A model generated the notes under the pieces. It did no database searches and was not told the origin of the DNA. It worked only from the letters and a program-made list of their open reading frames with translations. The translations under genes and the position numbers were made by a program. Below, in pieces: positions 9,139-55,080 of a DNA stretch of 55,822 nucleotides; the stretch's first letter is position 1; each line of letters starts with the position of its first letter. The DNA comes from Octopus bimaculoides (taxonomy: Eukaryota): contig NC_068982.1 in NCBI RefSeq assembly GCF_001194135.2, positions 78,492,016-78,547,837 of the forward strand, read 5' to 3'.

Positions 9139-9244
9139 AGATGATATATATATATATATATTAATACTAGGGATGAAAATTTACAGGTATATATATGATG
9201 GTCGTCTACTCCTTATGCAGAGTTTGACCACCTCCTGTACCTAC

Positions 9245-9790
9245 ACCTTAGCACCATCATGACATCTGATGTGACTTTTTAAACCAGATGCTGTTTTTAA
9301 AAGACACCCACATAGATTGCAAATCCAATTTGGACCACCAAGAGCTGCAGATAACTTCTGATCTTTGTGGATCTTAAAATGTCTTTTGAGGTCTCTGTTA
9401 GATTTGCAAAGCTTCTGGTATACATTGTGCACAGTGTGTACAGACATATAGGCAGAATAGTTGGTGGAGGTTTGTTTTCCATGGGTTTACAACTGAGATT
9501 TCAGCCCAGTAAAAGAAGGCATGGTCTGTCATGGACTGTGCACACAAAAAGGTCATTGTGATTCACCTTCTCAGTTGTAACATTCTGCCTTAAATCTCTT
9601 TTGAGTCTTACATGCCTTATCCTATCCTCTTCAAATGATTACACTCTACACTTTTGTTCGCCATCCAGCTCGATCCAAAGCAAAGGTTTCTATGTTCTCT
9701 GGATCCATTCTAGGTGACTTTATAATAATCCTTGTGCCATCCTTAAACCTTTTTTTAGGTTTACGTCAATAGTGTTTCCGCTCCACAAGC
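9245..9790 (-). mobile_element. RTE-type LINE 3' remnant with C-terminal C2H2-like finger
   Basis: IYGEL...RKPKKRFKD...ALDRAGWRTKV...FEEDRIRH...WICNLCGCLLKTASGLKSHIRCH is a typical RTE RT tail ending in CxxC...H..H. Confidence 0.7.
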
Positions 9791-10024: not shown

Positions 10025-10412
10025 TTTACTTGTGTCAGTCATTAGACTGCAGCCACCTTGAACAATCTTAGTTGAACATAACCCCAGTGCTTACTGCTTT
10101 TAGGGAAGCCTGGTACTTATTTTATTGGTCTCTCTTGTCTAACTGCAAAGTTACAGGGATGTAAACACACCAACTTTGGTTGTCAAGTGTGAGGTGGTAG
10201 GAGGACAAACACATACACAAAGATCTACACACACATACCCATATATATATGTACATAGGGCTTCTTTCAATTTCTGTCTACCAAATTCACTCACAAAGTT
10301 TTGATCAACCCAAGGCTATAGTAGAAGAAATTTGCCCAAGGGGCCACCCAGTGGAACTGATCTTGGAACCTTATAGTTGAGAAATAATGTTCTTATACAA
10401 CCACACCTGCAC
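10025..10412 (-). mobile_element. tRNA-derived SINE, near full length
   Basis: Head (10255-10412), microsatellite and tail (tttacttgtgtcagtcattagactgcagcc...) match the 52310-52683 family. Confidence 0.75.
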
Positions 10413-10587
10413 CTAACAAAATAGAGAATTGGAAATCTTTTGGTATCATTTATTCACCGTTACTCCTATTTCATTTGCTTATAGGAATTACAGTTTTACA
10501 TATTAGATAGACATGTAAGGAATTTCTGAATGTGTTTTAAGAAGAAACAGATGGGATTTCCCCAAACTACTTCTGCAATAGCCATGA

Positions 10588-11040
10588 ATAGCATTAAATA
10601 GCTATAGAATTAAACTCTATATCAATCATAAGGGTACACAAGGCACCTACCTGCTAGAAAGAGGAATTAAAACCCTCATTTAAACCACCAATAACACTGA
10701 AAAATATGACAGATAATCAACAGTAGTCGGGTGAATGGGTAAAATAATTTGTAACATACCAATATAGCCCAATGCTATATATTTTGGTATTTGGATATAC
10801 TTGGATCATGATTTCTGGTTCTGGCGAAAAGCCTTACCTTCATCGGCAAGTCTTACAAATTGAAAAGATTTTCAACTTGTCACTTTGAACGTTGGCAGAT
10901 TTTCTGATTTTCTGTTGTATATTTCAGTGTTATTAATGGTTTAAATGAGGGTTTCAATTCCTCTTTATAGCAGGTAGATGCCTTGTGTGCCCTTATGATT
11001 GATATAGAGTTTAACTCTATAGCTATCTAATGCTATTTAA
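10588..11040. mobile_element. Fold-back element (~135-bp inverted arms) with an HHR in the loop
   Basis: Arms 10588-10722 and 10906-11040 are reverse complements (aatagcatta.atagctatag...cctacctgctagaaagaggaatt..aaccctcatttaaacca). Confidence 0.8.
10799..10851 (-). ncRNA. Minimal type-I hammerhead ribozyme, U4C core variant
   Basis: Minus strand: acttg-CCGATGA-aggtaaggcttttcgccagaacca-GAAA-tcatga-TC/caagt. Stem I is 5 bp, stem II is ggt/acc + ggc/gcc, stem III is palindromic ATCATGAT, and the site is AUC. Confidence 0.7.
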
Positions 11041-11388
11041 GGTCTGTAACCACCTATATTATTGTTGTTGTTATTATCAATTATTTATATTACTGCAGAT
11101 AATAATAACAATAACATTCTGAATATTTACTCCTTATTACTATATATATGTATATATATATAAAATTTTGAGGATTCTAGAGAATCAAGTATTTTAAATA
11201 GTGAGAGCACCAAAGTCGGCTTGGTAATTATACTTTTGTGTACAAACAATGTATATTGAAATGTACATACTCACTACAGTGAACATGAATTTGTTCACCA
11301 GTTATTCATACATTCACAAGTCACTGACTGAATACACAAAATGTCATCAAGTTCATACATGGGTACACTCACTGCACTTATTGTACCG

Positions 11389-11433
11389 CCATCTAAAGAC
11401 TCCAGATCCAAACATCTGAAACAGCTGTAGTGA
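11389..11433 (+). ncRNA. Decayed HHR-like motif
   Basis: ccat-CTAAAGA-ctcc agat ccaaac atct-GAAA-cagctg-TA-gtg. The 3' half is identical to the 19806/47708 ribozymes; G5 is mutated and stem I is weak. Confidence 0.3.
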
Positions 11434-11454
11434 ACCACAATCTGTCTGTTGTGT

Positions 11455-11489
<35 letters not shown>

Positions 11490-11641
11490 ATTTATGTATA
11501 TATTAATATTATCTTGGTTGAAAAAACTTCAATAATGAAAATATGTTAATAGTTACCAGGGTAGCAAAAACCACAAAAACTGGGATATCATACCTGATTA
11601 ATAGGTAGAAATACCAGGTTAAAGTGATGTATTTTGAGTAG

Positions 11642-11732
11642 ATATGAAGAATAATAATAAATGGAGCAAAACGCATATAAAGGAACTTATTGATTATATG
11701 CGTTTTGTTCCATTTATTATTATTCTTCATAT
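11642..11732. repeat. 39-bp-arm near-perfect hairpin
   Basis: atatgaagaataataataaatggagcaaaacgcatataa, 13-nt loop, ttatatgcgttttgttccatttattattattcttcatat (1 mismatch). Confidence 0.85.
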
Positions 11733-11859
11733 ATATATATATATATATATATTAATATTATATTGCCTGTATATGTATATGTGTATATACATATATATGT
11801 ATATGTGTATTACATCCCTGTATATACATATACAGGCAATATAATATTAATGGATGCTT

Positions 11860-12290
11860 AACAGAGGGATGTTTATCCCTTTTGACCAGTGCAAAGGTTG
11901 ACTGATCCCAATCAACCCTCATACTAGTCAAAAGAGATAAACTTCCCTCTGTTAAACATCTATTAATGTTATACCGCCTGAACAAATGAATCCATGAAGA
12001 TGATCAAACCGATGCCCATGGATACTATAGACTACACTGTAATCATCCTAGGAATTCGAACTGTGATCTCAAGAGGCCTGTGATTTATGAAAATGCGTAT
12101 GTAGCGATGCATTAAATGTTTATAGATTCCATCCAAGGATTGTTATTATATTTCTCCTACATTATATCAGTACAGCTCGATGCAATCCCCAAAAGCTGGT
12201 TCACCAGTCAGCATCATTAGACTGTAGCCAGCATAATGGAATAGGAAGTTTATTTGCATATTCAAAATGTTTCCCGTAAACAATTTTAAA
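11860..12290. repeat. Dispersed ~350-bp repeat (other copy 18945-19310, opposite orientation) with a locally inverted end
   Basis: 11945-12290 is the reverse complement of ~18945-19277, while 11861-11890 (cagagggatgtttatcccttttgaccag) matches ~19271-19300 in the same orientation. Confidence 0.8.
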
Positions 12291-13187
12291 AGATATACTT
12301 ATACATATATATACTTACACATGCACACATACAAATGCACACACACACACACACATATGTATGTATATGTATATATACATACACACACACACACAACACA
12401 CACAATGGAATTCTTTCAGTGTCTTTCTACCAACTTCATTCACAAAGCTTTGGTTAACCTGGAGCTGTACTACAAGACCCTTGCCCTGGGTACCACACAG
12501 TGACATAGAATATGGAGTCATAATTGTGCCAACCAACATTTAAAAACTGGCCTATTGTGCAACAGAAGAAAAAAAAAAGCAAGATAGAAGAGACCAATTT
12601 ATTTTAGTATTAGAATTCAAATATTTTCTTAATTTTGATTCCCCCAGGTTTCCATACAATTCTGTAATTATTAATTGGCAATCTTAACACTTCACTCTGC
12701 AAATAACTTCACCTAATTTGGCATTTCCTTCCCTAGTGAAGTTTTAAGTTTCTGATAAACTCTTAGGATCTTTACAGTTACTCAGTTTTACACAGTGTTG
12801 GACAATGCCAAAGAGCTTCTCCCTCTTTAAAGAAATTCAAAGAAGTAGACATAAAGACAATCAAGTTTTAGGACAAGAGAATAAAAAAAGTAGCGATTCT
12901 TAAGCTTTTCATGCTTTTCTTGAAAACTACTCTAGTGTTAACCCTTTGCCTGTCCGGAGTATCACATGAGATACACAGGACATATTTCCCTGGTGTCCAT
13001 GCATCATTTAAGATACACATTCCTAATTTTTTCAGCTACAAGGTGTAGCAGTGTAGTAAGAAGCTTACTTCCCTACCATATTGTTTCAGGTTCAGTCCCA
13101 TTGTGAAGCACCTTGGCCAAGTGTCTTCTACTATAATCTCAGGCCAACCAAAATGGATTTGGCAGATAAAAACTGAAAGAAGCTCAT

Positions 13188-13244
<57 letters not shown>

Positions 13245-13269
13245 ATCAAAACAGTATCATTCAAATTCG

Positions 13270-35840: not shown

Positions 35841-37249
35841 NNNNNNNNNNNNNNNNNNNNNNNNNNNNNNNNNNNNNNNNNNNNNNNNNNNNNNNNNNNN
35901 NNNNNNNNNNNNNNNNNNNNNNNNNNNNNNNNNNNNNNNNNNNNNNNNNNNNNNNNNNNNNNNNNNNNNNNNNNNNNNNNNNNNNNNNNNNNNNNNNNNN
36001 NNNNNNNNNNNNNNNNNNNNNNNNNNNNNNNNNNNNNNNNNNNNNNNNNNNNNNNNNNNNNNNNNNNNNNNNNNNNNNNNNNNNNNNNNNNNNNNNNNNN
36101 NNNNNNNNNNNNNNNNNNNNNNNNNNNNNNNNNNNNNNNNNNNNNNNNNNNNNNNNNNNNNNNNNNNNNNNNNNNNNNNNNNNNNNNNNNNNNNNNNNNN
36201 NNNNNNNNNNNNNNNNNNNNNNNNNNNNNNNNNNNNNNNNNNNNNNNNNNNNNNNNNNNNNNNNNNNNNNNNNNNNNNNNNNNNNNNNNNNNNNNNNNNN
36301 NNNNNNNNNNNNNNNNNNNNNNNNNNNNNNNNNNNNNNNNNNNNNNNNNNNNNNNNNNNNNNNNNNNNNNNNNNNNNNNNNNNNNNNNNNNNNNNNNNNN
36401 NNNNNNNNNNNNNNNNNNNNNNNNNNNNNNNNNNNNNNNNNNNNNNNNNNNNNNNNNNNNNNNNNNNNNNNNNNNNNNNNNNNNNNNNNNNNNNNNNNNN
36501 NNNNNNNNNNNNNNNNNNNNNNNNNNNNNNNNNNNNNNNNNNNNNNNNNNNNNNNNNNNNNNNNNNNTGGTTGTAGTAGTAGTAGTAGTAGTAGTAGTAG
36601 CAGCAGCAATAGTAGTGGTACCGGTGGTGGTGATTGTAGTGACAGCATGGTAACCAAGTCCTTTCAAAGTGTTTATTCAAGAAGGGGTGTGGTTATTTTT
36701 TTAATCCTGATTGGTCATTGAAGCAGATCTGGTAGAATACATCAAACTCTAAACTTCAAAAGAACAGGTTAACCACACTTTAATACATTTATATAGGCAA
36801 AGAGAACAACCACCACCACCACCACCACCACTATAGTACCCTCGTCTTTCTCTCACACTCTCCTTCTCATCCCTTTTATGTCTTCTGTAGAGAAATAAAG
36901 AAATCCCTCTGTCAATTTTGTTCTTGAATACTTCTTCTTCTCTCTCTCCTCCTCCTTCTTCTCCCTCCTCTTCCTTCTTCTCTGTCTCCTTCTTCTTAAC
37001 CTCCTTCCTCTTCTTTTCTTCCTCCTCCTCCTCCTTCTTGTGCTGCTACTGTTGATACTGTCACCTGTCATTATCACTGATGTTGCAACACAGTTTGTAA
37101 TGTGTGTGCGCTCGTGTATGTGTATGTGTGTGTGTGTGCGTGCATGTGTTTGTGTTCCCCTTTAGTGTATGTATTTGATGTAATACAGCCAGTTATCAAA
37201 ACCTAGGACTTTGCATCAGAATGGCACCTTAACCAATGAATAATATAAG

Positions 37250-37885
37250 CAGCAGGCTAAAATAAGTCCTGGGGTTACTATGATTGGCTGAAAACAACCT
37301 AGGAATTGGACTGTGATCATACTGGCTATCACCCACATCATAAGCAGTTGTCAGAAAATATCATCACAGTATTATCTACCGATGGGACATGATGTTGTAG
37401 TTAGAACACTCCAGAATGAAATCCATTGGAAGGATAATCCCAAGGACAAAGAAATAAGAACTTACAATATGGTAAAATCCACAGCCACTCATAATAAAAA
37501 GGAATACTAGTGGAATGTACCAATGAAGACCTCAATAAAATGTAAGCATAACAGACCTGATATAATGATTTGGAATAGAGAAGAGAAACTGTGCATAGTT
37601 GTGGAAATTAGCTGCCCAGTGGGTGTTGACATAAAGCTGAAGATCAGTGAAAAAGAGAACACCTATGCTGAACTATTAAGAAATCTGCAGTTACTCTATC
37701 CAGATTACATGTTCAGGTTTATACCTGTAATTATTGGGACCCTGGGATATGTAACACACTGCCTAAATACGAATCTTGAGAAATTACATTTCTCAAAACC
37801 AGGAAGAAGAAAGCTAATTTGAAGATTACAGATCCAATCCTTCACCGGAAGTGTAAAATCTGTAAAACTTTCCAGAAGTTTATCA
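37250..37885 (+). mobile_element. Non-LTR retrotransposon with restriction-like endonuclease (R4/Dong/R2-group), 3' remnant
   Basis: ITHIISSC...YYLPMGHDVV (zinc-knuckle end, RHD), EY*WNVPMKT, HNRPDIMIW...VVEISCP (PD-D/E), EKENTY..L...FIPVIIGTLG. Confidence 0.85.
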
Positions 37886-39159
37886 TTTAAATATATATGA
37901 GCATGTCTAGATATGTAACTCTATGCATGAGAATGCATACATAAAATATACAAATCTGCACATACACACATACATACATACATACATACATGCATACATA
38001 CATACATATATATATGCATGCATACATACATACATACATTCAGGCATACACAAACACATACATACATACATAAAGTGCAAGTAGCCATGCTTCTCCACAA
38101 CAATAAGCCTGTCCCTACGCTTCCCATCATACTTTAACTTCCCAACACCCCTCTTAAAGAAACCACTCTATCTTGAGCAGATCCTTCTTTCTTACAAGTT
38201 ACAAAGTGACTTCACTAGTGCTGGTGCTATGATAAAAGCACCCAGTACACTCTGTAAAATGGTTGACATTAAGAAGGACATCCAACCATAGGAAGGGCAT
38301 CAAGCCATAGTGAGGGCATCCGGCCAGAGGAAGAGCAACCAAACCAAAACTGAAGTACTAGAGCAAGACAAAGTTCTCTGATTCATTGAGCCCAGTCAAA
38401 ACGTCCAGCCCATGCTAGCATGGAAAGCAGATGTAAAAATGATGATGATAGGCCATCAGCATTAGTGAGTCTGCCATGCAGTTTGCAAGACTATAAACCA
38501 CCTCACTCAGAGTTCATAGACTTGCACAGTTCATGGCAGACTCTGTTAGTGATGGTGTGAGGAAAAAAGCACCCAGTACACTCTGTAGAGTGGTTGCCAT
38601 TAGGAAGGACATTCAGCCATAAAGCTATACCAAGACAGTGAAGCACAATGTAGTCCATGAACCTGCCAGATCCTGTCGAATGTCCAACCCATGCTGGCAT
38701 GGAACATATACATTAAATGATGACTGTGATGATGGTGATGAAAGTCTATGTCAATGAGTGTGTGTGTGAGTGTGAGTTTGCATGCACACACGTCTGTGTG
38801 TGTGTGTATGAGTGTATATACATAAGTATATTTCCATTTTTTGCTGATAATTCTTAAGTCTTCTTCATCATCATCATCAACATTTTAGCACCAACTTTTC
38901 CATGCTTGCGTGGCTCAAATGGAATTCAATGAGGCAGATGTTCTACAGCTGGCAGCACTTCCTGTGAGAGCTTCTAAGTAAAGTATTTTTCCCCATGATA
39001 ATACAATGTCACCTCACAAACACACACACACATACATATGTTTCCATCTACCAAATGTACTCATTACTGTGCAGTAGGACTGAACTTGAGGCAACATGTT
39101 TGGGATTCAAGTTTTTTAACCACACAGCCACATCTGCTCCTATTATATTTAATCCAATA

Positions 39160-39470
39160 TTTGAAGGCCCATGGCTCAGTGGTGAGAGTTCAATTCCTAG
39201 ACCAGGCTGTGTGTTGTATTCTTGAACAAGACACTTTATTTCATGCTGCTCCAGTTCACTCAACTGTAGAAATGAGTTGCGAAGTCATTGGTGCCAAGCT
39301 ATATTGGCCTTTGCCTTTCCCTTGAATAACATCAGTGGAATGGAGAGGGGAGACCGGTATGCATAGGTGACTGCTGGTCTTCCATAAACAACCTTACCTG
39401 GACTTGTGCCTCAGAAGGGAACTTTCTAGGTGCAATCCCATAGACTTTCATGACCAAAGAGGGTCTTTAT
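39160..39470 (+). mobile_element. Third SINE family (shorter related copy ~41030-41170)
   Basis: ggcccatggctcagtggtgagagttcaattcc (A/B-box like) ...gtattcttgaacaagacactttatttc..gctccagttcactc. Confidence 0.55.
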
Positions 39471-42400
39471 ACTATGAAAAAAGAAGAATCCTATTTGGCC
39501 ATATGTAAGAGGTTCACCTTTGTAAAAGTTTATCTTCAACTTCTATATCCTGTTATCATGACCCAATAAGAGACAAAGAAAGAAGGAGAGAGTAGAAATT
39601 ATGTTTTTGCTTGGCCTGCTAAAAATAGCAGTGAAATGTCTTTCAAATTACACCTTCCTGGCTTTGAAAAAACATGATCATAAACATATTGTATTAGAAA
39701 AATAAAAACACGGGATTGCCATGGTTAGAATGATTTTAGATCATGTGATGACTTAGGGCTTTACAACAATAATAACAAGATCCTGTTTACTTGTTTAGTA
39801 ATGTTTTTGATCTTTAATTTGTATAGTGGGTGTATGTTTGTGTATGCGTGTGTGCATTTATATGAGGGTGTGTGTGAGTGCTTGTGTGTGTAAATGTGTA
39901 TGTGTGTGTGTCTGTATTCAACAATGAAATCATAGGTACACAAAAGAAAATAATAGACTATTTCGTGTAGTGTGCGACAGAAAAACCTTCCTAAATTCAT
40001 TATTGTTGATGTATAAAATATGGGAAGTCTTTCTGCTGCCTCCTGTAACAACTCACAAAAGGTTGGTTTATTCATTGTGTTATGTTGAGGTTTATAAAAT
40101 CAGATTTGATCACAACAAGTTTTATGTTGTACTTACAGACACGACACATTTTCTTTTGTCTTTTCCGTTGCCTTTCTTTCTCTCTGCCTGTCCCAGTTTA
40201 AATAAGTATCAATTATGTTTCACTGCTGAAACCTTCAAATATCTTCTCTGATCAATCAATAAATAAAAGAAATGGTGGTCATAGCTGGAATGTCTTTGAA
40301 GCTAGGTCTACTAAACAAGGGCGGCCTGAGTTTAAACAACAGCAATTAATGCAAATATGCAGAATCAACCAAACGAGATGAGTAAATATAAAGTAGTTTC
40401 TGAAAGAAGAGTGTTGTAGTTTGCTTTGAAGCATTGAGAGATATCATCATCATCATTATCATCATCATCATCACCATCATCATGGAAATCACCACCACGA
40501 CCACCACCATGACCACAACGACAATGACGATGACCACCACCACTATCGTTATCACCATCATCATCATCATCTTTATCATAGCTGCTGCTGCCATTACCAC
40601 CACCACCACCACCACCACCACCATCATCATCATAGAATCCACTACCACCATTACCACTGCAGCTGCCGCCACCACCATCACCACCATCATCACTCAAAGT
40701 CTATTTTCCATGTTGGCATGGGTTGGACAGTTCCACTGGAACAGTCAAGTCAGAATACTTGCACCAATCCCTGCTGACTGTTTTTGGCATGGTTTTTGGA
40801 TGCCCTTCCTAATGCCAGTCACTTTGCAGAGTGTATTGGGTGCTTTTTTATATGGCACTAGCAACAGTGAGGTCACCGAATGACTTGCCAGATAAAATAT
40901 CTGAATTGAGGGCAGGGTGTAGTACTGAGCAACAAAAGTAAAATAACAAAATAATGAAGACAGAGAGCTACTTGCAATGCAAAACACTTCTTAAATTTTT
41001 ATATTTCTCAATCATTATAAAGGCCTGTGATCTAACAGTTACAGTGTTTGGTTCATGATCATATGATCAAGAGTTCAATTCTGGACTGAGCAGCACATTA
41101 TGTCCTGGAGTATGAATCTTCCTTTCTCACTGCTCTAGTCTTTTCAGCTGTAATGAGTACCAGTTGGGTACAGATGCATCTCTCTCCCCTTTCTGTTATC
41201 ACATGTTAGATGCTTGCAACTAAGTTGAAAGTGAGGCAGGAAGTAAATACAAGGGAGTATGTCTGCTTGTGATTAAAACAATTATCAAAAACATCGCACT
41301 TGTTGCTAAACCACACTCACTCATGAATAACAACTCGATGTATTCTTATTATTTGATAAATATTGTTATGATAATACTGTGCTGAAGAGGCCTAATAAGA
41401 CTGAAGCACATCAGAAGTTGTCACTCTTACTCACCAAATATCAGACATATACCCTATCATACAGCCCCATTTAATTTTGAATTAAGATGTTTTTTGGAAT
41501 TGTCTCCCTTCTCTTATTTCACCAGAATTAATTAATAAACCTAACCATTTTTTTGTTGTTGTTATTTGAGGCTTGATCGTAATTATTTAACCATTTTTAT
41601 GTGATTCTCTAATTAAACTTTTTCCCCAACTTTAATATATGTTCTTCATGCAAAAAGCATCCCTGGGGATGATGGTGATGATGATGATAAGGAGGAGGAG
41701 GAGGATGATGGTGCTGGTGGTGGTGGTGGTGATGCTGTCAGTGATGGAGAAAATGATGATGATGACGACTTTGATGAAGATAATGATGATGCTGATGATG
41801 GTTGTGATGATGATGACAATGGCATCATTACATCTTGACAACAACAATGATGTTGGTGAAGATTCTTTATTCCCCCATCCACTCTACTTCACTTCCCCAT
41901 AAACCAACTGCCTCTGGTTTTAAAATATTCTTTAGACCACAACTTTGCATGACAATGAAACAGATAAGATCACAATAGCATTTAAAATAGAAACAATTAA
42001 TTTTAGAATTTTATCCAAAATCTCATTAAAACTTTTGTAGTTTAATTAATCGAACAAACTCAATAAACCAGATAAAGTTATTCTGGAAGTTTTGAGTAAT
42101 TCTAGCCAGGTCTGAGATAAAATAAGGTGTTAACTGAATAACATGAGATTAAAGGGTAAGTTTATATATTTTCTAACTATGTTTATGAAGCTATGGGTCT
42201 AGATTCTCTTAATATTATGCGGAGGCAAATTTTCAATGGGCAAAATTACAATTTGCCCTTCTTATAACAGACAAGTTGACACAGTTTGTTAATTTTACAA
42301 TTTGCCCATTTGACAATTTGTCCAATTTACAATGGGTAAAATCACAATTTGTCTATTTAACACTCATCATCATCACTATCATCATCACCATCATCATTAC

Positions 42401-43289
42401 TGTTTAATGTTTGTGTTCCGTGGGTAGCATAGTCTGACTGGATCTGATGGGCCTAAGGACTGCATAGTGCTCCAGTGTCTGCTTTGACATGGTTTCGACA
42501 GCTGGATGCCCTTCTTAGTGCCACCCACTTTACAGTATGTATTGGGTGTTTTTATATTTTGTGGCACCAACATTTGTGAAGTTGCCATGTAGCTTGCAAG
42601 ACTATGGGTCCTTAGTGGAGAGAGGCAACTTTTATGCTAAGAGGATAAGGAGTAGAGGAGGGTAAGGTATGAGAGAGAGGGCCAGAGCAGGATGGTTAGT
42701 GATAAGACTATCTACATGTTAGAAGAGAGGATGGAGAGGGGTGGAGCTGGAATTTGATGTAAATGATGATGAAATGTCAGAGTGAAACCTAGAAGGTCCA
42801 CTTTTTCCAATTATATAGATTTGCACATGTAAAATAAATAAGCAATTATTCTTAACTCAGGTAAACACAAGAAAAATATAAAACAGCAAAAGACAAGTGA
42901 TGATAATAACAACAACAAAAGTTTATGTGATGGTCATTGATGTAAGGGTAGAATTATTAGTGTTATTTTGGTTTAGCCCTTAGTTAGACTTGATTGAACA
43001 ATTATATGAACAAAGGTGTTCAAGCTGTAACAATTCCATCTTCTTCTTCAGACATAGTATATCTAGGAGTACATTATTTAATGTGTCCTCTTATTTCTTT
43101 TTCTTAAATGGTTAGGCATAGTATATAAGAGATTAGGCTGTTATTTCAAGCAAGTCAAGCAACTGTACACTTTATGGTCAGCTTTTGTAAGATTGTTGTT
43201 GCTGTTGATGATTAATGCCAAGTAAAGTCTGACCAGAAGTATTCTAACCCTAACAGCTTTACAATTTTTAGGGTTATCTAGAACTTCTC

Positions 43290-43935
43290 ATCATCATCAT
43301 CATCGTCATCAACAGTTAACATCTGTTTTCCATGGGTTGGACAGCCTGACAGGAACTGACAACACCAGTGGCCACATCAGGTTCCGTAGTCTGTTTTGGT
43401 TTGGTCTCTAGAGCTGGATGCCCTTCCTAATGCCAACCTTTTTACAGAGTTTACTGGGTGCTTTCTATGTGGCACCATCACCAGTGGTTTTTACATGGCA
43501 CCAGCACTCACACCAATGCTTTTTACATGGCACTTGGTTTTCAGATATCTATTCTGTTGTGGTGAACAGGTCTTCCTGAGTACAGCAATGCACCACATAT
43601 CTTGGTCCTCTGTCATCTCCTTCATAAGACTCAGCATTTTGAGATCAACCTTCAATACTTCGTCCCATATCTTCCTGGGTTTCCTTCTTCCACAACCTCC
43701 TTCCACTTTAAGAGATGAGCACTTCTTTATGCAGCTATGCTCATCCATCCACATCACATGACCAAACCAGCACAGTCTCCTCTCTTGCACACTGCATATA
43801 ATTCTTCTTGTGCCCAACTTCTTTCTCAATACACCAGTAGTCTGTTGTACATGCACACTGACATTGCACATCCAGTGGAGCATACCAGCTTCAATTCTCT
43901 CTAGTGTATGTATGTCTTCTATATTCAAGCCCACA
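43290..43935 (-). mobile_element. RTE LINE 3' part
   Basis: ORF 43491-43934: LERIEAGMLHWMCNVSV...VQERRLCWFGHVMWMDEHSCIKKC...GRRKPRKIWDEV, followed by the shared tail. Confidence 0.85.
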
Positions 43936-44041
43936 TTATCGACTTTAATGTGCCCTTCCTGTTCTTTAAAGTATTAATGCGTGATTTAATGGAAATTTAG
44001 CTGCCATTTTTAGCAAGTCTAGTGACAATGTATAAATTTAC

Positions 44042-44125
44042 TCATTCCCCTATGTAAGAACACAGTAATATTAATTGAAGGAGTTTTCAAATATATCGCA
44101 ACTACTGATGCATTCGCACACTCTG
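44042..44125 (-). CDS. Candidate 84-nt symmetric (phase 1-1) internal exon, product unknown
   Basis: Acceptor tccttacttttAG, open frame (x)ECANASVVAIYLKTPSINITVFLHRGM, donor GTAAAT, non-repetitive sequence with CpGs. A competing + strand 66-nt candidate (44066-44131, ILIEGVFKYIATTDAFAHSAK, donor GTAAGG) overlaps it. No homology recognised. Confidence 0.2.
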
Positions 44126-46453
44126 CTAAAAGTAAGGAACCATGTAGCTCTTCTGCAACAAGAACTTAGTCTGTCTTGTTCCCTTCTTTCATACTTTAAC
44201 CTCTCATCTGCTACTATAAGGCAAACCTTCCCTTGGGGTTCATTGTTTTGCAAGTTGCATGGTGACCTCACTAGAGCTAGTGGCATGGGAAAAGCATCCT
44301 GTTGATGTGAGGAAGGGCATCAAGCTATAGAAACCATAGCAAAGCAGACACTGCAGCATGATGTGGCCCTTTGGACCCATCAGATCCGGTGAAACCATCT
44401 GGCTCATGTCAGAATAGGACATGGATGTTAGATAATGTAAAGAAAAAGACCCTGTGACTAATAAGAATAATCAATAATAAGGGTGTTGATGACAATAATG
44501 ATGGCGATGATGAATATGAAGATGGTGGCTGTAGTGATGGTTGTGACTGTAGTGGTGATGACAACAATGATGGTAACGATGACACTAAAGATGATAATGA
44601 TGATGATAATGATGGTGATTGATGATGATGATAATAATAATGATGACTGATGATAGTGATGATGATGATGATGATGATAATAATGATGATGATAGTGATG
44701 ATGATGATAATTATGGTGATGATGATTATGATGACAATGATGACAACAATGATGATGATGTTGACAATAACGATGATGGCGCTCTTGACAATGACGATAA
44801 TGAAGATAATGATGAAACAGTCCGCACAAAAGAGTTGTATACAGAGAGCTATGTGTTTTTCAATATTTCATTCAACATAGCAGAACAATGGATGAATGTA
44901 TCTCGATTCAATTATTGATAAAAATCAATAGCTCATTATTGTTAGTAAAGTGGTGGTGGTGGTTGCAGTGAAGGAGGAGAAGATGGTGGTGGTGGTGGTG
45001 GAATGAATATTTTTATAGTATTAGGTACATTTAGGCTGGGCAACTGTCCTTTACTACAGAGTTTCTTTGACCAGGATGAAAAGTTATGCATCGCCTGGTC
45101 CAGCTACAGCAGACGAGGTTCATTGCTTATTTACCAGTAAAACATAAAATATGTATAAATTATCTTTATATCCATGTGTGTGTGTGTATATATATATANN
45201 NNNNNNNNNNNNNNNNNNNNNNNNNNNNNNNNNNNNNNNNNNNNNNNNNNNNNNNNNNNNNNNNNNNNNNNNNNNNNNNNNNNNNNNNNNNNNNNNNNNN
45301 NNNNNNNNNNNNNNNNNNNNNNNNNNNNNNNNNNNNNNNNNNNNNNNNNNNNNNNNNNNNNNNNNNNNNNNNNNNNNNNNNNNNNNNNNNNNNNNNNNNN
45401 NNNNNNNNNNNNNNNNNNNNNNNNNNNNNNNNNNNNNNNNNNNNNNNNNNNNNNNNNNNNNNNNNNNNNNNNNNNNNNNNNNNNNNNNNNNNNNNNNNNN
45501 NNNNNNNNNNNNNNNNNNNNNNNNNNNNNNNNNNNNNNNNNNNNNNNNNNNNNNNNNNNNNNNNNNNNNNNNNNNNNNNNNNNNNNNNNNNNNNNNNNNN
45601 NNNNNNNNNNNNNNNNNNNNNNNNNNNNNNNNNNNNNNNNNNNNNNNNNNNNNNNNNNNNNNNNNNNNNNNNNNNNNNNNNNNNNNNNNNNNNNNNNNNN
45701 NNNNNNNNNNNNNNNNNNNNNNNNNNNNNNNNNNNNNNNNNNNNNNNNNNNNNNNNNNNNNNNNNNNNNNNNNNNNNNNNNNNNNNNNNNNNNNNNNNNN
45801 NNNNNNNNNNNNNNNNNNNNNNNNNNNNNNNNNNNNNNNNNNNNNNNNNNNNNNNNNNNNNNNNNNNNNNNNNNNNNNNNNNNNNNNNNNNNNNNATTGA
45901 AAAGGTTGCAACACTGAATGGACGGGTGGCATGAACATCAACAGTGAGCTACGAACACCTCTCTGATTTGCAGATACATATATACATATACATATACATA
46001 TATATATATATATATATATATGTTCATATAATGATATCTACCAAATGTATTGGTGAGATAAAATATGTAATTGCTACCAAAATATCAAAAATTCGTCCAC
46101 AAAGGTCTATAGCAAACTCCTTATGAATCGATCTCCTTGGTTATATATCAAAAAATTTAAATAAAAGCTTTGATGGTAAATCCATATATATTAAAGTTTA
46201 TTACCTAGGTAGCAGTAAGAGGAGTTTAATACCTCTAAGGGACAATTAAATCCAAAGTCGCTCCTGGTTATTACCTGGGTAGGTACAGTCTTTTGTAAAG
46301 TTGTACTGTGGCAGGTGGTTCAGTTGGTAGACCGTAGTTTAGGTTATAAAGGAGAAGAAAATTGATATAATAACAAGGGGAAACTCATCGTTTTCGCTGG
46401 TATGCATTTAATTTAATTAGATAACAAAGGAGGAGGAAGCAATGATGAATGTG

Positions 46454-46504
46454 GCATTTACAATCATTTTGGTTTACGAGTTTTAGTAAATCTCTTCAGA
46501 ATGT
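46454..46504 (-). ncRNA. HHR in left arm, G12A
   Basis: Minus strand: catt-CTGAAGA-gatttac taaaactc gtaaacc-AAAA-tgattg-TA/aatg. Confidence 0.5.
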
Positions 46505-46600
46505 GCAAAGAGGATTGTACATCAGTTAGGATGCGAAAATATACCATCACATATGTATCAATTATTTTCGCATCCTAACCGTTGTATCAATCCTCTTTTC

Positions 46601-46651
46601 GTATTCTGAAGAGATTTACTAATACTCATTAATCAAAATTATTATAAATGC
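46601..46651 (+). ncRNA. HHR in right arm, G12A
   Basis: gtatt-CTGAAGA-gatttac taatactc attaatc-AAAA-ttatta-TA/aatgc. The two arms together suggest an ancestral gatttac/gtaaatc stem II and GAAA. Confidence 0.5.
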
Positions 46652-46913
46652 TACAGTCATCATTGCTTCCTCCTTCTTTGTTATCTAATTAAATTAAAGG
46701 CATACCAGCGAAAACAATGAGCTTTCCCTTGTTATTATATCCATTTTCTTCTCCTTTATATATATATATATATATATTTATAAAATGTATTGGTATCTAG
46801 AAGACCCAAAGAGTGGCAGGGAATGCTAAGTAAGTGCTAAGGATAGACTATAGTTAAACTCTTGGTTTGATCGTGATATGAGTGAGGAGTTTAATGTGGG
46901 TCATGTATTAGCC

Positions 46914-46968
<55 letters not shown>

Positions 46969-47164
46969 TAAAATTATAATTAAGGGTATCTCTTAGATAT
47001 CTTAATTATAATTTCAATAATAATTATTACCTTTTGAGGTTTTTATTCGCATGCTGGCCACCTGATAGGATCGGTATTTTAAATAATGATCTTATCCTTG
47101 CGCAAAAGAAAACCAGTTGCACACTCAGAGACTAACATGAACAGTCACGGATTTAAACTGGTGG

Positions 47165-47220
47165 TCCACACTGACGAGGCTCAGAGTTAAATACCCAAAA
47201 GCCAAAACCTGGTTTGTGGA
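47165..47220 (+). ncRNA. Hammerhead ribozyme, single G12A change
   Basis: tccaca-CTGACGA-ggct(18 nt)agcc-AAAA-cctgg-TT/tgtgga. Stem I 6 bp, stem II 4 bp, stem III ACC/GGT, GUU site; only G12 (47204) deviates. Confidence 0.7.
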
Positions 47221-47637
47221 TATCCCTAATTGCATAATATTTTTATTTGTGCTGTTAAATGTTTTAATTCTTTCTGTTTTCCTCGCATATTGTTTTTCTC
47301 TGTTATATTGGTGCGCTACGGTAGATTAATTTAAGACTTAGCTCTTATTTCTAGCAGGTAGATGCTTATTAAGCATCATTACGCTTCGTGCAAATTTATA
47401 ATTCATAGCTGTTTAAAGCTATTATAACTGCGTTCCACCCATGCCACTACTGGTGATATCATCAAATTTTGANNNNNNNNNNNNNNNNNNNNNNNNNNNN
47501 NNNNNNNNNNNNNNNNNNNNNNNNNNNNNNNNNNNNNNNNNNNNNNNNNNNNNNNNNNNNNNNNNNNNNNNNNNNNNNNNNNNNNNNNNNNNNNNNNNNN
47601 NNNNNNNNNNNNNNNNNNNNNNNTATATATATATATA

Positions 47638-48535
47638 TTAGACAAGAACAGATAACAAAGCTAAGGCTGTGAGGAGGTTTCAGGGCATTTATAAGGAAAG
47701 AGATATAGTCTTACAGCTGTTTCTGGAATATTATGGATATCCCATCATCAGAGACGATGAGAGAGAGGTAAATGTTTGAGTTCGAAATAAGGAAATTATT
47801 ATGGAAAAAGAGGAGAAAAAATAGAGGGAAATAAGAGAATGAAGGTAGAATTATTCCATTATTCGAGTAAAGTGGTGTATAGAATGGGTAAAAAAGTTTC
47901 CTGTACATGTTATGTAAGTTCCGATAATAGCTCGTGTTTAGTCATTTCAAAGTATGGAGCTGTGGATTCTATGTTGCCCATTCAAAGGGGTTTTGTGGTG
48001 TAAATGAAAATTTGAGAATGTATTGATAGTATTTGGGGATAGCTGGAGGAGGGAGATATGTGTATGATTAGAATGAAAAGATAGGTCAAAATGAAGAGAG
48101 AAAGGGAAAATGAGAGGAAGAAAGAGAGAAAAAAGAAAAAGGATAAAAGAGTAATGATAATAAAAGGAGAGAGAAAAGAAGAGGGAGAGGGAAGAAAAAA
48201 TGAAGAAAGGGTGACAGAGGTGAGAAAAGGAGTGTAAGTTGGTGGTCAAGATAATGTGAGGGGAGGATGGGAGAGGAGTGGGGGAGGGGTGGATAGGAAG
48301 AGATGAGAAGGTAAGGAGTGAATAAGTTTGAGATATGTGGGTAGGGGTGATATGATAGGGCTGTATTAAGGGATGGGCAGAGAAAAGGTATGGGTGGAGC
48401 GATACCAAAGTAAGTAGTAGTTTTAGTAGTAAAATTTAAAGTGAAGGGAAGAATACAAGGATGTCAAAGTTTCTATAAATAGACATATGTGATAGGTAGG
48501 AATAAGAGAGGAGGAAAGAAGGTATAATGACATAT
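47638..48535 (-). mobile_element. ~900-bp ORF-less HHR-bearing repeat family, copy 3
   Basis: Collinear with 19730-20675 and starts at the same (TA)n-ttagacaa junction. Confidence 0.85.
47708..47755 (-). ncRNA. Minimal type-I hammerhead ribozyme (intact)
   Basis: Minus strand: gtct-CTGATGA-tgggatat ccata atattcca-GAAA-cagctg-TA/agac. Stem II 8 bp (one G.U), palindromic stem III, GUA site between 47712 and 47711. Confidence 0.9.
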
Positions 48536-48864
48536 GTACGCTTGCACCCATGTACATATACATGTGTGCATATGCATACATACATATACACACATACATA
48601 CTTATGTTATTTCCAAGGGCACTGTGAAAAAAGTCTGAAAAATCCCCATCAAAACGGAGAAATTTCAACTTATATGGGCCCCCTATCACAGATGTCTGCC
48701 AAATTTTCGTTGAATGAGGAGTATCTCCTGTCCCTTAAAAGAATATAGGTCCAAATTTGAGGACAACCTATACCTGAGTCTAAGGACTAAGTTTGAACCT
48801 GATTGCTTTATTGGTTTTGGAGTGCATTGGTAACAAACAAACAAGCAATTTTAAATACATGGAT

Positions 48865-48932
<68 letters not shown>

Positions 48933-49234
48933 GAGAATATACGAAAAAAACAACAACAGACGAGGACAGGTGGTGTAAATAACAAAAGGATGTATTAGTA
49001 TGACGCTCGGGAATACGGAAAGTCTTTGACGTTTCGAGCTATATATATATATCTTAGAAAATTCAAGATGAGATGACTAGCAGGATTTTTTTAATATTGC
49101 AAGGAATTGCATAATTTTTGTATTTATTATGCAGCATGTTGATTGATATAACTATCCCATTGATTATTGAAATGGTTATAACTGATTAATAATGTAATAC
49201 CAGTATCTTTATTCTTATGTATAAGTATATATGT

Positions 49235-49276
<42 letters not shown>

Positions 49277-49322
49277 AATATATATATGCATATATATATG
49301 CATATATATGTGTATATATATC

Positions 49323-49390
<68 letters not shown>

Positions 49391-49446
49391 TTCGGTGTGT
49401 TGCATTCCATTACTTAGTAAATGAAAAACTATATAAATGAAAATAT

Positions 49447-49497
<51 letters not shown>

Positions 49498-49569
49498 TTA
49501 ATATACACAATTACAAAAGAGCTACTAATAGTTTCATGTTTCAAAGTACATTAAATTGGCAGATTTACA

Positions 49570-50615
49570 CAACATGCCATGTATCTCCTCCAAGCAATTT
49601 TTCAGGCTCAGTTCATACATTATATAATATAAAAACCAGAATGCTGGATTATGACCAAAAACATGAGAAAAAGTAAGAAGAAAATAAATGAGCAGAAAAA
49701 CGATTGATGCAAAAAGTGGAAGAAGAAGTAAGAACAGAAAAGTAAAATAAACCAAGACCTTCATTCTCTTTGACTGTAAAAACCATACCTACTAATTTGT
49801 CCAAAGTTGATTTCTTAGATGTTCTCCTAGACTAAAACTCATGCTCTTATAATATAAACCCCATCATGAATCAAATGAGATGCTCACATGTGTACATAAA
49901 CAGTCCTGTCATGCCCCTCCTATTGTGTTTAAAAACCTAATAGCCAACATCAGTAATAAGATATCTAATCTATCCTCTCCAAGAGAATATTTCTATAAAG
50001 CAGCCCCCTACTATATGCTCTAGCTGATAGTGGCTTCAAAAATAAGATAGCCTATAACCCCTCATGTATATGAAGCCTAGAAATAGACCTAAGAAAATAA
50101 TATGGTTCACTCCACCTTTTTCCATAACTGTTAAAACTAACATAGACAAGAAACTCCTCGTATCATTAAATAAGCATTTCCCAATATGAAGGACATTATC
50201 ACTTGTAAGTCATATCAAGAACTAACTACTAGTTGTAACTTTCGAGACCACGAAGTTTGCTTGCAAATGAAAAGCATGAAATATAAAGCTGAAGTTACAG
50301 AAGTGCTCCAAGACAACATAATTGAGAAATGGAATTATATTGGTCTATGCTAAGGCAATTTTAAAAACCATTATGCAAACCACCAGTCTTCTTTCTGACA
50401 TTGATAAAAATAATGGCACTAAGCTGGCTAGCCATGTACGGGGTCTGAAGACCAACTGCACACCACATACAATCAAGCAGAGAATCATGAAGAAATGTAC
50501 ACTTAAATGAGAGATACATGTTATGCATAGTTGAAAGATCGCACATTCTTTTTAGATCCAAGAATTCCACCACACTACTTAATTCCAGATTCAAAATTTT
50601 TAGCACATGCACAAG
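49570..50615 (+). mobile_element. Penelope-like element (Neptune-type): RT C-terminus, linker and GIY-YIG, decayed
   Basis: SKVDFLDVLLD; YIN...HAPPIVFKNLIANISNKISNLSS...YKAAP..ALADSGF; RPKKIIWFTPPFSITVKTNIDKK...KHFP; YKAEVT; YIGLC*GNFKNHYANHQSSF; GTKLASHVRGLK; CIVERSHIL...LLNSR. Confidence 0.88.
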
Positions 50616-50715
50616 TTTCCTTTGTTGAACTGAAGGACATCATCCACTCCAGGTTGAATAACTAACTCACAGACTTTGGCCTCCTTTCTGTTGTTTCATT
50701 CTGCACCATCTACAT

Positions 50716-50935
50716 TATGATTTCTGCAGTCAAAGAGGATAAAGCTCTTGGTTTACTTAATTTTCTTTTCTTTCTTATTGTTTCTCTTTTTTGCATCAAC
50801 CTCCTTCAGGTTTTTTTTTCTTCAATAGTTTTTTCTTCTCATTTTTTTCTCATAGTCCAGCATCCTGGTTATTAAATATGTCTAGTGTATGAACTGAACT
50901 GGAGAAATTGCATGAAGGTACATGGCATGTTAATC
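50716..50935 (-). mobile_element. Inverted, diverged copy of the PLE RT segment 49570-49790
   Basis: Reverse complement aligns with aacatgccatgta...cagttcatac...accag.atgctgga.tatga...ccaaga..tt..t.ctctttgactg. Confidence 0.7.
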
Positions 50936-50938
50936 TAA

Positions 50939-51379
50939 TGCAATGTTATTACCAGTTTAAATATGCCAGTGGCATGTTCGAACTGGTAAAGAAGCCATTC
51001 ACTATGTTTTGTCATGGAGAAAATTTCTTGCTGTAGACAAATGGTGTAAATACACCTAAATCAGCTTGCAGCACCATCTATGCAGACTGTGAGATGCTGG
51101 TAGCTACCAGCCAATATATGATGACAGGAGTAGCATAAGAGAGATTGTCTCTCTTATCAGTTCACAGCACCACCATCCAGTTTCTGTGACTGAAGAGAAG
51201 ATAACCACTTCGAAATGCTTGTATCTCTCAGTCTGGATAGGTGGTGCTACAAGCTGATTTAGGTGTATTTACACCATTTGTCTACAGCAAGAAATTTTCT
51301 CCATGACAAAACACAGTGAATGGCTTGTTTACACGTTCAAATGTACCACTGGCATATTCGAAATGGTAATAACATTGCA
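50939..51379. mobile_element. Fold-back (~155-bp arms) with an HHR in the loop, adjacent to the PLE remnant
   Basis: Arms 50939-51094 and 51224-51379 include a near-perfect 58-bp core (ttttgtcatggagaaaatttcttgctgtagacaaatggtgtaaatacacctaaatcagcttg). Confidence 0.9.
51186..51227 (+). ncRNA. Minimal type-I hammerhead ribozyme (intact core)
   Basis: gtga-CTGAAGA-gaag ataacca cttc-GAAA-tgcttg-TA/tctc. Stem II 4 bp, GUA site after 51223; stems I and III are imperfect. Confidence 0.72.
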
Positions 51380-52309: not shown

Positions 52310-52683
52310 TGCATGGTAAGTAACTTGCTTACCAACCACATGGCTCCAGGTTCAGTCCCACTGCGTGGCACCTTGGGCAAGTGTCTTCTACTATAGCCTC
52401 GGGCCGACCAAAGCCTTGTGAGTGGATTTGGTAGACGGAAACTGAGAGAAGCTTGCTGTATATATGTATATGTATGTGTGTGTGTTTGTGTGCCTGTGTT
52501 TGTCCCCCCAACATTGCTTGACAACTGATGCTGGTGTGTTTACATTCCCGTGACTTAGCGGTTCGGCAAAAGAGACTGATAGAATAAGTACTAGGCTTAC
52601 AAAGAATAAGTCCTGGGGTTGATTTGTTCAACTAAAGGTGGTGCTCCAGCATGGCCACTGTCAAATGACTGAAACAAGTAAAA
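52310..52683 (+). mobile_element. tRNA-derived SINE, best-preserved copy
   Basis: gcatggtaag..acttgcttaccaaccacatggctccaggttcagtccc (B-box-like) ... gggcaagtgtcttctactatagcc...cggaaactga, microsatellite, then tail ending gactgaaacaagtaaaa. Confidence 0.9.
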
Positions 52684-52739
52684 NNNNNNNNNNTATATAC
52701 AAATGCATGTATATATACATATAAATATATTTTTTTATT

Positions 52740-53163
52740 CTTTTACTTGTTTCAGTCATTTGACAGTGGCCATGCTGGAGCACCACCTTTAGTTGAACAA
52801 ATCAACCCCAGGACTTATTCTTTGTAAGCCTAGTACTTATTCTATCAGTCTCTTTTGCCAAACTGCTAAGTTACGAGGATGTAAATACACCAACATTGGT
52901 AGTCAAGTAATGGTGGGGGACAAACACAGACACACAAATACATACATATATTCGACAGGCTTCTTTCAGTTTCCATCTACCAAATCTACTTTGGTCAGCC
53001 CAAGGCAATAGTAGAAGACACTTGCCCAATGTGCCATGCAGTGGGACTGNNNNNNNNNNAAGGCAATAGTAGAAGACACTTGCCCAATGTGCCATGCAGT
53101 GGGACTGAACCCAGAACCATGTGGTTGAGAAGCAAGCTTCTTACCACACAGCCACTCCTGCAC
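52740..53163 (-). mobile_element. tRNA-derived SINE, tail-to-tail with the 52310 copy
   Basis: Reverse complement of the same family; the segment ~53003-53049 is duplicated across a 10-N gap. Confidence 0.9.
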
Positions 53164-54696: not shown

Positions 54697-55080
54697 TAGG
54701 TGCAGGCATGGCTATGTGGTAAGAAGCTTGCTTCCCAACTACATGGTTTCTGGGTTCAGTCCCACTTCGTGGCATCTTGGGCAAGTGTCTTCTACTATAT
54801 CTTTGGGCCAACCAAAGCCTTGTCAGTGGATTTGGTAGATGGAAACTAAAAGAAGCTCATTGTATATATCAATATGTATATATGCATGTCTGTGTCTTTG
54901 TGTCTGTGTTTGTCTCCCTATCATTGCTTCAAAACTGGTGTTGGTGTAATTACATCCCTGTAACTTAGTAGTTCGACAAAGAGACCAAGTAAGTCTTGGG
55001 GTTGATCTGTTTGACTAGGATCCTTCAAGGCAGTACTCCAGTATGGCTGCAGTCAAATGACTAGAACAAGTAAATGAATA
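54697..55080 (+). mobile_element. tRNA-derived SINE, near full length
   Basis: aggtgcaggcatggctatgtggtaagaagcttgcttccc...gggttcagtccc...tail. Confidence 0.85.

Follow-up and report, generated by a model that had tools for sequence, protein, structure and literature searches.

Minimal hammerhead ribozyme motifs in a repeat-rich stretch of the Octopus bimaculoides genome: probable relics of Penelope-like element 3' ends

Are the hammerhead ribozyme (HHR) motifs scattered over a 55,822-nt stretch of the Octopus bimaculoides genome (NCBI RefSeq assembly GCF_001194135.2, contig NC_068982.1, positions 78,492,016 to 78,547,837 of the forward strand) real, and if so, what kind of element left them there? 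This stretch, referred to below as the window, consists of 50,117 bases of sequence and 17 assembly gaps; positions are counted from its first nucleotide, and motifs are named by their lower coordinate and strand. An earlier note on the window had reported about 18 minimal type-I HHRs, approximately one per 3 kb, in 8 or more families described as unrelated and lacking open reading frames (ORFs), and had interpreted them as parts of a retrozyme-like, possibly novel system. Our analysis shows that the motifs are real as a set and that they are very probably the 3'-end minimal type-I HHRs of Penelope-like elements (PLEs), at least partly of the Hydra clade, which survive as old, mostly 5'-truncated and often mutated relics.

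The motifs were searched with a type-I descriptor (helix I - CUGANGA - helix II - GAAA - helix III - U - H - helix I'), in which helix III is closed by the A15.1-U16.1 pair and is followed by H17 and the 3' strand of helix I. With the canonical core and a mismatch tolerated at 10.1/11.1, four sites were found (five if a helix I of 3 bp was permitted), compared to 0.01-0.02 sites in 100 dinucleotide-preserving shuffles, a control that the earlier note had suggested. Because real DNA is richer in hairpins than shuffled DNA, we added a control in which the real sequence was kept and the core was swapped for permutations of its own letters. The true core gave 5 strict sites, whereas the mean for the 539 decoy cores was 0.063 and the maximum was 2. 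When up to one core substitution was allowed, the number of sites rose to 13, against a decoy mean of 2.0 (standard deviation 1.6). Zero-mismatch matches numbered only six in the whole window, and two-mismatch matches occurred at about 0.2 per kb. A loop-less, self-complementary helix III was not required by the descriptor; a helix III loop of 0-1 nt was found in 5/5 strict true matches and in 2/34 decoy matches (Fisher p = 3.6e-5). The type-I three-helix order with an open-ended helix I was above chance relative to both the shuffles and the decoy cores. The motifs are therefore far above chance and specifically hammerhead-like, and their reality as a set is confirmed.

We consider 13 motifs, belonging to 8 sequence families, to be credible minimal HHRs (one per 3.9 kb read), and four further sites (5255-, 19594-, 46599+ and 30800-) to be doubtful. 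The number, the family count and the density given in the earlier note were thus close to ours. Nine of the ten sites named there fit the type-I descriptor and the tenth, 51186+, fits with one internal mismatch in helix I. Their assignment to minimal type-I HHRs like those of PLEs, in which helix III is palindromic, is supported, the helix III palindromes ACAGCUGU, ACCAUGGU, AUCAUGAU and ACAAUUGU were found as stated, and the predicted cleavage positions (after 33732; 47712/47711; 19810/19809) appear correctly placed. It had also been pointed out that the helices differ between families and still pair. Such pairing is indeed seen, but it is partly imposed by any descriptor search and cannot count as independent evidence, and covariation within the window rests on 2-4 copies per family. 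Two other matches, 2825- and 54015-, are probably due to chance; the spurious one-mismatch 'hammerhead' 54015- lies inside a decayed Tc1/mariner-type transposase.

The core is intact in 8/13 motifs (47708-, 19806-, 21608+, 34794-, 26659-, 51186+, 33673+ and 16525+) and carries a single substitution in the other five: U4C in 10799- and 18843+, C3U in 34957+, and G12A in 29365+ and 47164+. These substitutions affect essential core positions and are inactivating. Both G12A changes hit the C11.1-G12 CpG, and we infer that they are the expected product of decay. In dimer co-folds helix III was intermolecular, and for the compact motifs the dimers were 7-11 kcal/mol more stable than two monomers. 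None of the motifs contains an N, the nearest gap being 46-1808 nt away. The elements surrounding 16525+, 26659-, 47164+ and 47708- are cut by gaps, therefore the element ends at these four sites were not used as evidence.

Searches with Rfam in gathering and E-value modes, carried out on the whole window and on two sub-regions, returned no usable hammerhead match. The best local score was 17 bits with Hammerhead_3 (gathering score 48.5) at 47164+, the sole motif touched by Rfam. As the Rfam models represent canonical hammerheads, this result is not evidence against the motifs; Cervera and de la Peña needed a special descriptor for minimal HHRs for the same reason (PMC4209133). When metagenomes were scanned with a pattern of the family 1 ribozyme, no match was obtained.

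A direct connection with PLEs comes from protein remnants. A 79-aa open segment at 27077-27313 (+) had 450 relatives in an exhaustive HMMER search. The family consensus, derived from 20 full-length relatives, contains an N-terminal RWK motif, DKT in place of DKG, reverse transcriptase (RT) motifs (FDIVEFYPSI, GLYRDDGL), a CxCX5C linker and, after the RT, a GIY-YIG domain followed by CxxC..E..N..CxH. These are the features given by Craig et al. (2021; PMC8557442), hence the family can be identified as Hydra-clade PLE. One named relative is from Apostichopus japonicus, a host named for Hydra-clade PLEs (PMC8557442). Using profiles built from the family, hmmsearch identified three remnants in the window, all colinear with the profile. 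The longest (49746-50625, +) is 5'-truncated and frame-shifted, with colinear segments matching approximately profile positions 347-657 of 673 (best E-values 4.8e-11 and 3.4e-8); it covers the RT thumb, a decayed linker (CNFRDHEVC, 50174-50350), the GIY-YIG domain and the C-terminus. The second (5765-6302, -) is an endonuclease remnant (profile positions 499-653, best E = 2e-11), whose 5' side runs towards the gap at 6614. The third (27005-27313, +) is a C-terminal endonuclease fragment (profile positions 591-664, E = 1e-28) with CPLC..E..N..CKH at 27077-27313.

It must be noted that this protein family is difficult to detect by routine methods. Pfam recognised nothing in the PLE fragments, in 10 relatives or in 7 full-length relatives, a profile search of PDB sequences with the family gave no match, and a word-indexed homology search with a hand-joined endonuclease peptide returned no relatives; the exhaustive HMMER search alone was successful. 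Two weaker profile matches were also obtained. The match at 21299-21481 (-) had E-values of 0.003 (endonuclease profile) and 0.34 (full profile); it lies about 550 nt, all microsatellite, upstream of a family 1 copy (19720-20743) on the same strand. If this match is real, family 1 could be the long 3' tail of a PLE. Just downstream, on the minus strand, of the other weak match (14257-14394, -; endonuclease) there are two TG/CA-rich 233-nt units, 94% identical, at 13538-13997, which extend across a 10-N gap (13765-13774).

PLE loci outside the window show the same association of endonuclease and ribozyme. The contigs encoding the closest relatives of the window endonuclease fragment (L001-L007) come from one run series, SRR11869384-94; they are Logan contigs of runs SRR11869384, -85, -90, -91 and -94, and the series was probably obtained from the host of the window or from a close relative of it. 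All have a ribozyme or its remnant 250-300 nt past the endonuclease, with a loop-less helix III of ACAUAUGU or AUAUAUGU: L001-L003 contain a canonical minimal HHR, L004 an A14G remnant, and L005-L007 an intact core with a broken helix I. No HHR was found downstream of the endonuclease in L008, the fourth locus, which is from a metagenome, thus an HHR or HHR remnant follows the endonuclease at this distance in 3/4 outside loci. The complete layout is present at L009, on a 5.4-Mb contig with an intact 685-aa member of the family, in which an HHR lies 92 nt past the stop codon; the element ends about 36 nt past the HHR and a (TA)n tract is located a further ~80 nt downstream. The same contig carries an inverted, 5'-truncated copy (99.7% identical) with its own HHR on the other strand. 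The L009 ribozyme can be aligned with that of family 3 of the window: they have in common the core, helix I (ACUGU/ACAGU) and helix III (ACUCAGAGU vs. ACUYUGAGU), and their helices II differ by a symmetric 2-bp length change which keeps the pairing. The alignment indicates that the family 3 cores, CCGAUGA and UUGACGA, have decayed from CUGACGA.

The description of the motifs as belonging to unrelated, ORF-less families is thus not supported as it was given. There are three Hydra-clade RT/GIY-YIG remnants in the window, 51186+ lies about 550 nt past one of them, and family 3 has a homologue in the ribozyme of an intact PLE, therefore decayed 5'-truncated copies of autonomous PLEs offer the simpler reading. 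Two families are tied directly to PLE protein or to an intact PLE, family 2 and family 3. In family 2, motif 51186+ (51186-51235) is the only motif in the tail of remnant 49746-50625, and is on the same strand. It has a canonical core, 5/6 pairs in helix I, helix III AUGCUUGUAU and a predicted cleavage site at 51225|51226, and in co-folds it is embedded in a competing longer hairpin. It occupies the 127-nt centre of a head-to-head structure (50939-51379) with 157-nt inverted arms of 90% identity. The other member, 26659- (26659-26750), also has a canonical core, with a 7-bp helix I, a 10-bp helix II with a 39-nt loop, helix III AUGUAUGU and predicted cleavage at 26666|26665; it is 255 nt from the endonuclease remnant 27005-27313, in opposite orientation. 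The two motifs have CUGAAGAGAAGAU..CUUCGAAAUG in common, and their helix I sequences differ yet pair. We also considered that this block is an antisense coding motif (VIFSS / 'KYIG'), and rejected it, since the two motifs are alike only in the core and in the two strands of helix II, which are separated by loops of 7 and 39 nt. Family 3 consists of 18843+ (18843-18890), with the U4C core, a 9-bp helix I and helix III ACUUUGAGU, and its sister copy 34957+ (34957-35003), with the C3U core. In both, the element ends about 40 nt past the ribozyme in AATAAAGT, followed by (TA)n.

Family 1 is the most numerous. One member, 47708- (47708-47755), is a strict descriptor match with a canonical core and the layout GUCU-CUGAUGA-U-GGGAUAU..AUAUUCC-A-GAA-ACAGCUGU-A-AGAC; its predicted cleavage site is at 47712|47711, and its dimer co-fold has an 8-bp intermolecular helix III. 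Motif 19806- (19806-19853) has a canonical core with A.A at 10.1/11.1 and predicted cleavage at 19810|19809. Motif 21608+ (21608-21655) is decayed, with mismatches in helices I and II, and has kept its helix III palindrome ACAAUUGU; its cleavage site would be at 21651|21652. The surrounding elements are at 47628-48601 (-), at least 1 kb, with the HHR about 90 nt from the 3' end; at 19720-20743 (-), 82% identical to the former and with microsatellite on its 5' side; and at 21445-21741 (+), a 5'-truncated copy of about 300 nt. All three have the identical end TTGTCTAA and then (TA)n, approximately 90 nt past the cleavage site, the tract of 47628-48601 running into a gap. The fourth motif, 34794- (34794-34840), is family 1-like: its core is canonical, its helix I is only 3 bp, and the A-U at 10.1/11.1 covaries with the U-A of 47708-, but the likeness to family 1, whose helix III is ACAGCUGU, is limited to the ribozyme.

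The remaining families are represented by single motifs. In family 4, 33673+ (33673-33737) has a canonical core, helix III ACCAUGGU and predicted cleavage at 33732|33733. It is part of a composite insertion (33240-33998, +), made up of an inverted 109-nt partial copy (33240-33348), the ~510-nt unit with the HHR (33349-33871) and a partial tandem (33851-33998); the same TA-rich sequence flanks the insertion at 33198-33237 and 33997-34036. Family 5 is 16525+ (16525-16566), with a canonical core, a 6-bp helix I, a weak AU/GU helix II, helix III AGUACU and an assembly gap 46 nt downstream. The family 6 motif 10799- (10799-10851; U4C, helix III AUCAUGAU) is located in the 185-nt asymmetric centre of a head-to-head structure (10582-11042) with 138-nt inverted arms (90%). 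Family 7, 29365+ (29365-29413; G12A in CpG, helix III ACUGAUGUCAGU), is the single HHR of a partial tandem (29134-29617, +) of 1.4 units of 345 nt, with repeats at 29134-29272 and 29479-29617 (86%), which sits between TA-rich microsatellites. Family 8, 47164+ (47164-47221), likewise has G12A in CpG, and its helix III is ACCUGGU; a head-to-head pair at 25437-25642 consists of 5'-truncated copies of the region 3' of this motif (matching 47328-47470), both of which stop before the ribozyme. Among the doubtful sites, 5255- (5255-5315) is a possible decayed HHR (G8C, A15.1G) with a loop-less helix III, situated between direct repeats about 400 nt downstream of the PLE remnant 5765-6302. Because it has two core changes, and in view of the frequency of two-mismatch matches, it is not significant alone. 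Another, 46599+, a weak one-mismatch candidate, lies in the right arm of an inverted repeat (46345-46760; 173-nt arms, 90%) whose 70-nt centre has no HHR core; this structure is a head-to-head pair of PLE copies whose truncation went past the ribozyme, or else a foldback element of unrelated origin.

The architecture described above was obtained by self-comparison and repeat analysis of the window. (TA)n was found at the 3' ends of three copies of family 1 and two of family 3, and the copies differ by 10-18%. TRF detected no HHR-bearing array in the window, and there is no multi-copy tandem array with one ribozyme per monomer, just two partial tandems of 1.3-1.4 units with one motif each. Nor does the window contain a same-family motif pair on the same strand that is close enough to be in one transcript.

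According to the literature, the loop-less palindromic helix III of an active element of this kind would be unable to close in the monomer, and cleavage would therefore take place only when two copies pair, as they may in transcripts of tandem elements, where cleavage would trim the RNA to unit length. Dimer cleavage by minimal HHRs of PLEs was shown by Lünse, Weinberg and Breaker, as summarised in PMC6765202, and their activity was reported to be low even as dimers (PMC4209133). The copies in the window arose by target-primed insertion into TA-rich microsatellite, most of them being 5'-truncated and often accompanied by an inverted truncated partner or a partial tandem. We infer that almost all of the motifs are inert relics marking PLE 3' ends, and not working ribozymes.

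The motifs agree in many respects with the minimal HHRs of metazoan PLEs (PMC4209133). They share with them the type-I topology, the short helix I (4-7 bp) and a helix II of up to 10 bp; the match extends to a helix II of 7-10 bp combined with a helix I of 4-5 bp and an odd nucleotide 5' of helix II, and often to a position that departs from the standard, located between A9 and the helix II G-C pairs. Further common features are the loop-less or nearly loop-less palindromic helix III implying dimers, the many families per genome, the occurrence mostly as solitary motifs in truncated elements and the opposite-strand pairs 100-700 nt apart. There is also a difference: several window families have unpaired or variable 10.1/11.1 positions on both sides of helix II, whereas the known PLE motifs have a single bulged nucleotide and then a conserved G10.1-C11.1. 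The Hydra-clade PLEs, which are known from Cnidaria, Mollusca, Echinodermata and Arthropoda, have readily detected HHRs and insert into (TA)n; for PLE insertions, partial tandems (pseudo-LTRs, pLTRs), an inverted 5'-truncated copy and a bias for microsatellites have been described (PMC8557442), and the architecture seen in the window corresponds to this. The protein family of the window remnants resembles the Hydra clade in its RWK, DKT, CxCX5C and GIY-YIG motifs and in the CxxC/CxH around E and N, in full-length ORFs of ~690 aa, which imply elements shorter than 3 kb, in an HHR downstream of the ORF and in (TA)n insertion. Unlike Hydra-clade elements, the window holds only 5'-truncated, frame-shifted remnants, and 2/8 ribozyme families are tied to them.

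Several observations weigh against this assignment or limit its reach. There is no intact PLE in the window by profile search, and a descriptor search found no recognisable HHR in the tail of remnant 27005-27313. For families 1 and 4-8 the assignment to PLEs is based solely on the anatomy of the ribozyme and the architecture of the insertions; these families could come from Penelope/Poseidon, Neptune or other clades, and in family 1 no coding signal was seen over an upstream region of at least 1 kb. The conservation of the family 1 ribozyme is only modest: 19806- and 47708- differ at 2/48 positions, compared with 18% divergence elsewhere in the element (P = 0.004 relative to the element average), but conservation was just as high in several other 50-nt windows, and for this reason we did not rely on it.

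Could some of the families nevertheless be true retrozyme-like elements, as the earlier note had proposed? In that case certain ORF-less units, notably those of 345 nt (29134-29617) and ~510 nt (33349-33998) together with the non-coding family 1 of at least 1 kb, would be non-autonomous, their own minimal HHR would cleave their RNA, which may be circularised, the RT of a PLE would copy them in trans, and copying of more than unit length would produce the partial tandems. This is compatible with a PLE origin of the other families, and we regard it as possible, if doubtful. The units are short and ORF-less, are present in 1.3-1.4 copies with microsatellite on both sides, and family 1 is free of coding signal for 1 kb. 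For PLEs as well as for retrozymes, partial tandems have been proposed to arise by a rolling-circle process (PMC4209133, PMC7229834), and a 2026 preprint derives animal retrozymes from PLE pLTRs (10.64898/2026.07.22.740005), a relationship under active study (PMC7229834; 10.64898/2026.07.22.740005). Like animal non-LTR retrozymes, the units are AT-rich and a few hundred nt long, contain a type-I HHR, tend to be in tandem and probably depend on PLE machinery. However, animal retrozymes have canonical HHRs with loop 1-loop 2 contacts, one per monomer, and occur as dimers to large multimers (PMC7229834; 10.64898/2026.07.22.740005), whereas the window HHRs are minimal, with an open helix I that has no closing loop and a loop-less helix III, a variant which PMC7229834 distinguishes from the hammerheads of retrozymes, and the window contains neither a tandem array of 170-400 nt monomers with an HHR in each nor any array with two or more ribozymes. 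The cores of 29365+ and 10799- are mutated, and a similar repeat-unique(HHR)-repeat layout is present directly downstream of the PLE ORF remnant 5765-6302, therefore this may simply be what the 3' part of a truncated autonomous copy normally looks like. The retrozyme-like interpretation is for these reasons not borne out in the form in which it was made. The more specific proposal, that the 345-nt, the ~510-nt and the family 1 units are non-autonomous elements with a minimal, dimer-dependent HHR, mobilised by Hydra-clade or other PLEs, seems to us rather unlikely.

Two other explanations deserve even less credit than this one. That repetitive DNA rich in AT and in hairpins has produced the motifs by chance would agree with the failure of the Rfam hammerhead models at gathering score, and approximately two of the 13 one-mismatch sites and most of the two-mismatch sites are indeed expected by chance, the four doubtful sites possibly among them. 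But the true core gave 5 sites against a decoy mean of 0.06 and 0.01-0.02 in shuffles, the loop-less helix III was outside the search criteria, there are sister copies in the window, and an intact PLE elsewhere has a ribozyme homologous to family 3; chance is extremely improbable, and for the whole set it is already refuted. Equally hard to believe is that the motifs are host-domesticated ribozymes with a cellular role, e.g. in processing of transcripts at the locus. Nothing specific speaks for it, apart from the precedent of the few conserved amniote hammerheads thought to be active in mRNA biogenesis (cited in PMC7229834), and it conflicts with the location of the motifs inside interspersed repeats on both strands, with the mutated cores in 5/13, with the lack of evident gene context in the window and of a same-family partner for dimer formation. 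We therefore keep to the interpretation that the motifs are relics of PLE 3' ends.

Seen in this light the motifs are real, but nothing unusual for an invertebrate genome with many repeats. Thousands of minimal HHRs per metazoan genome, in many families and mostly in truncated PLEs, were described in 2014 (PMC4209133), and HHR-bearing Hydra-clade PLEs were reported from Mollusca in 2021 (PMC8557442), so the possible novelty raised in the earlier note is not supported. Penelope elements and hammerhead counts from Rfam appear in papers on cephalopod genomes; we found no catalogue of minimal HHRs for a cephalopod in the literature. The practical consequence concerns annotation. Rfam at gathering score reports none of these motifs and current Pfam misses the Hydra-clade PLE protein entirely, therefore PLE-derived sequence in such genomes is easily left unclassified. 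Used together, a minimal-HHR descriptor and a protein profile of the Hydra clade would put a name to an appreciable fraction of the 'unknown' repeats, and the motifs mark precisely both PLE 3' ends and the architecture of the insertions. For ribozyme biology there is little new unless the short units turn out to be non-autonomous elements that are active. If they were, and if a density of about one per 4 kb applied genome-wide, the host would contain hundreds of thousands of motifs, which annotation with Rfam would not see and which may be concealed in 'unclassified SINE' (short interspersed element) families, and the units would represent a molluscan bridge between PLE pLTRs and retrozymes.

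The window contains several other repeats and ORF fragments. The decayed Tc1/mariner-type transposase at 53250-54340 (-) is frame-shifted, and one of its segments matches Pfam Transposase_1 (E = 1.4e-17), the only fragment in the window that Pfam recognised. Two related ORF tails (..ERRLRWYGHV.RMDE..GRPRKTW..) at 32881-33171 (-) and 43494-43973 (-) resemble the C-terminus of a long interspersed element (LINE; RTE-like); a word-indexed homology search with the 160-aa tail returned no relatives. A clean 99-aa ORF with an ATG at 37523-37822 (+) (..RPDIMIWNREEK..VVEISCP..KY..L..) resembles a retroelement-associated domain, with no significant Pfam match and no exact protein match on record. An 81-aa open segment at 9244-9486 (-) has weak matches to C2H2/BED zinc fingers (E = 0.007-0.06), and may represent part of a zinc-finger gene or part of a transposon ORF.

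Among the non-coding repeats, a ~130-nt sequence with at least five copies of 82-89% identity (1645-1769, 4812-4932, 9026-9161, 34453-34591 and 55085-55209) is probably a SINE-like family. A second family, with members of 120-220 nt matching 10200-10415, occurs in at least eight places (e.g. 22568-22682, 30133-30337, 35601-35770, 52333-52505 and 54697-54917). The long, near-perfect hairpin at 52618-52806 (-) matches Rfam 'mir-5014' with 70.9 bits (gathering score 101) and spans a 10-N gap (52684-52693); its stem motif AGCACCACC recurs near 51166 and 51240, and it is probably a foldback or MITE-like (miniature inverted-repeat) repeat. In E-value mode Rfam gave about 280 'miRNA' matches (mir-297, mir-3149, mir-466 and others; e.g. 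1424-1507, 20679-20745 and 35767-35837). We rejected these, as all of them are TA/CA microsatellite hairpins, which are a trap for the automated annotation of non-coding RNAs in this genome.

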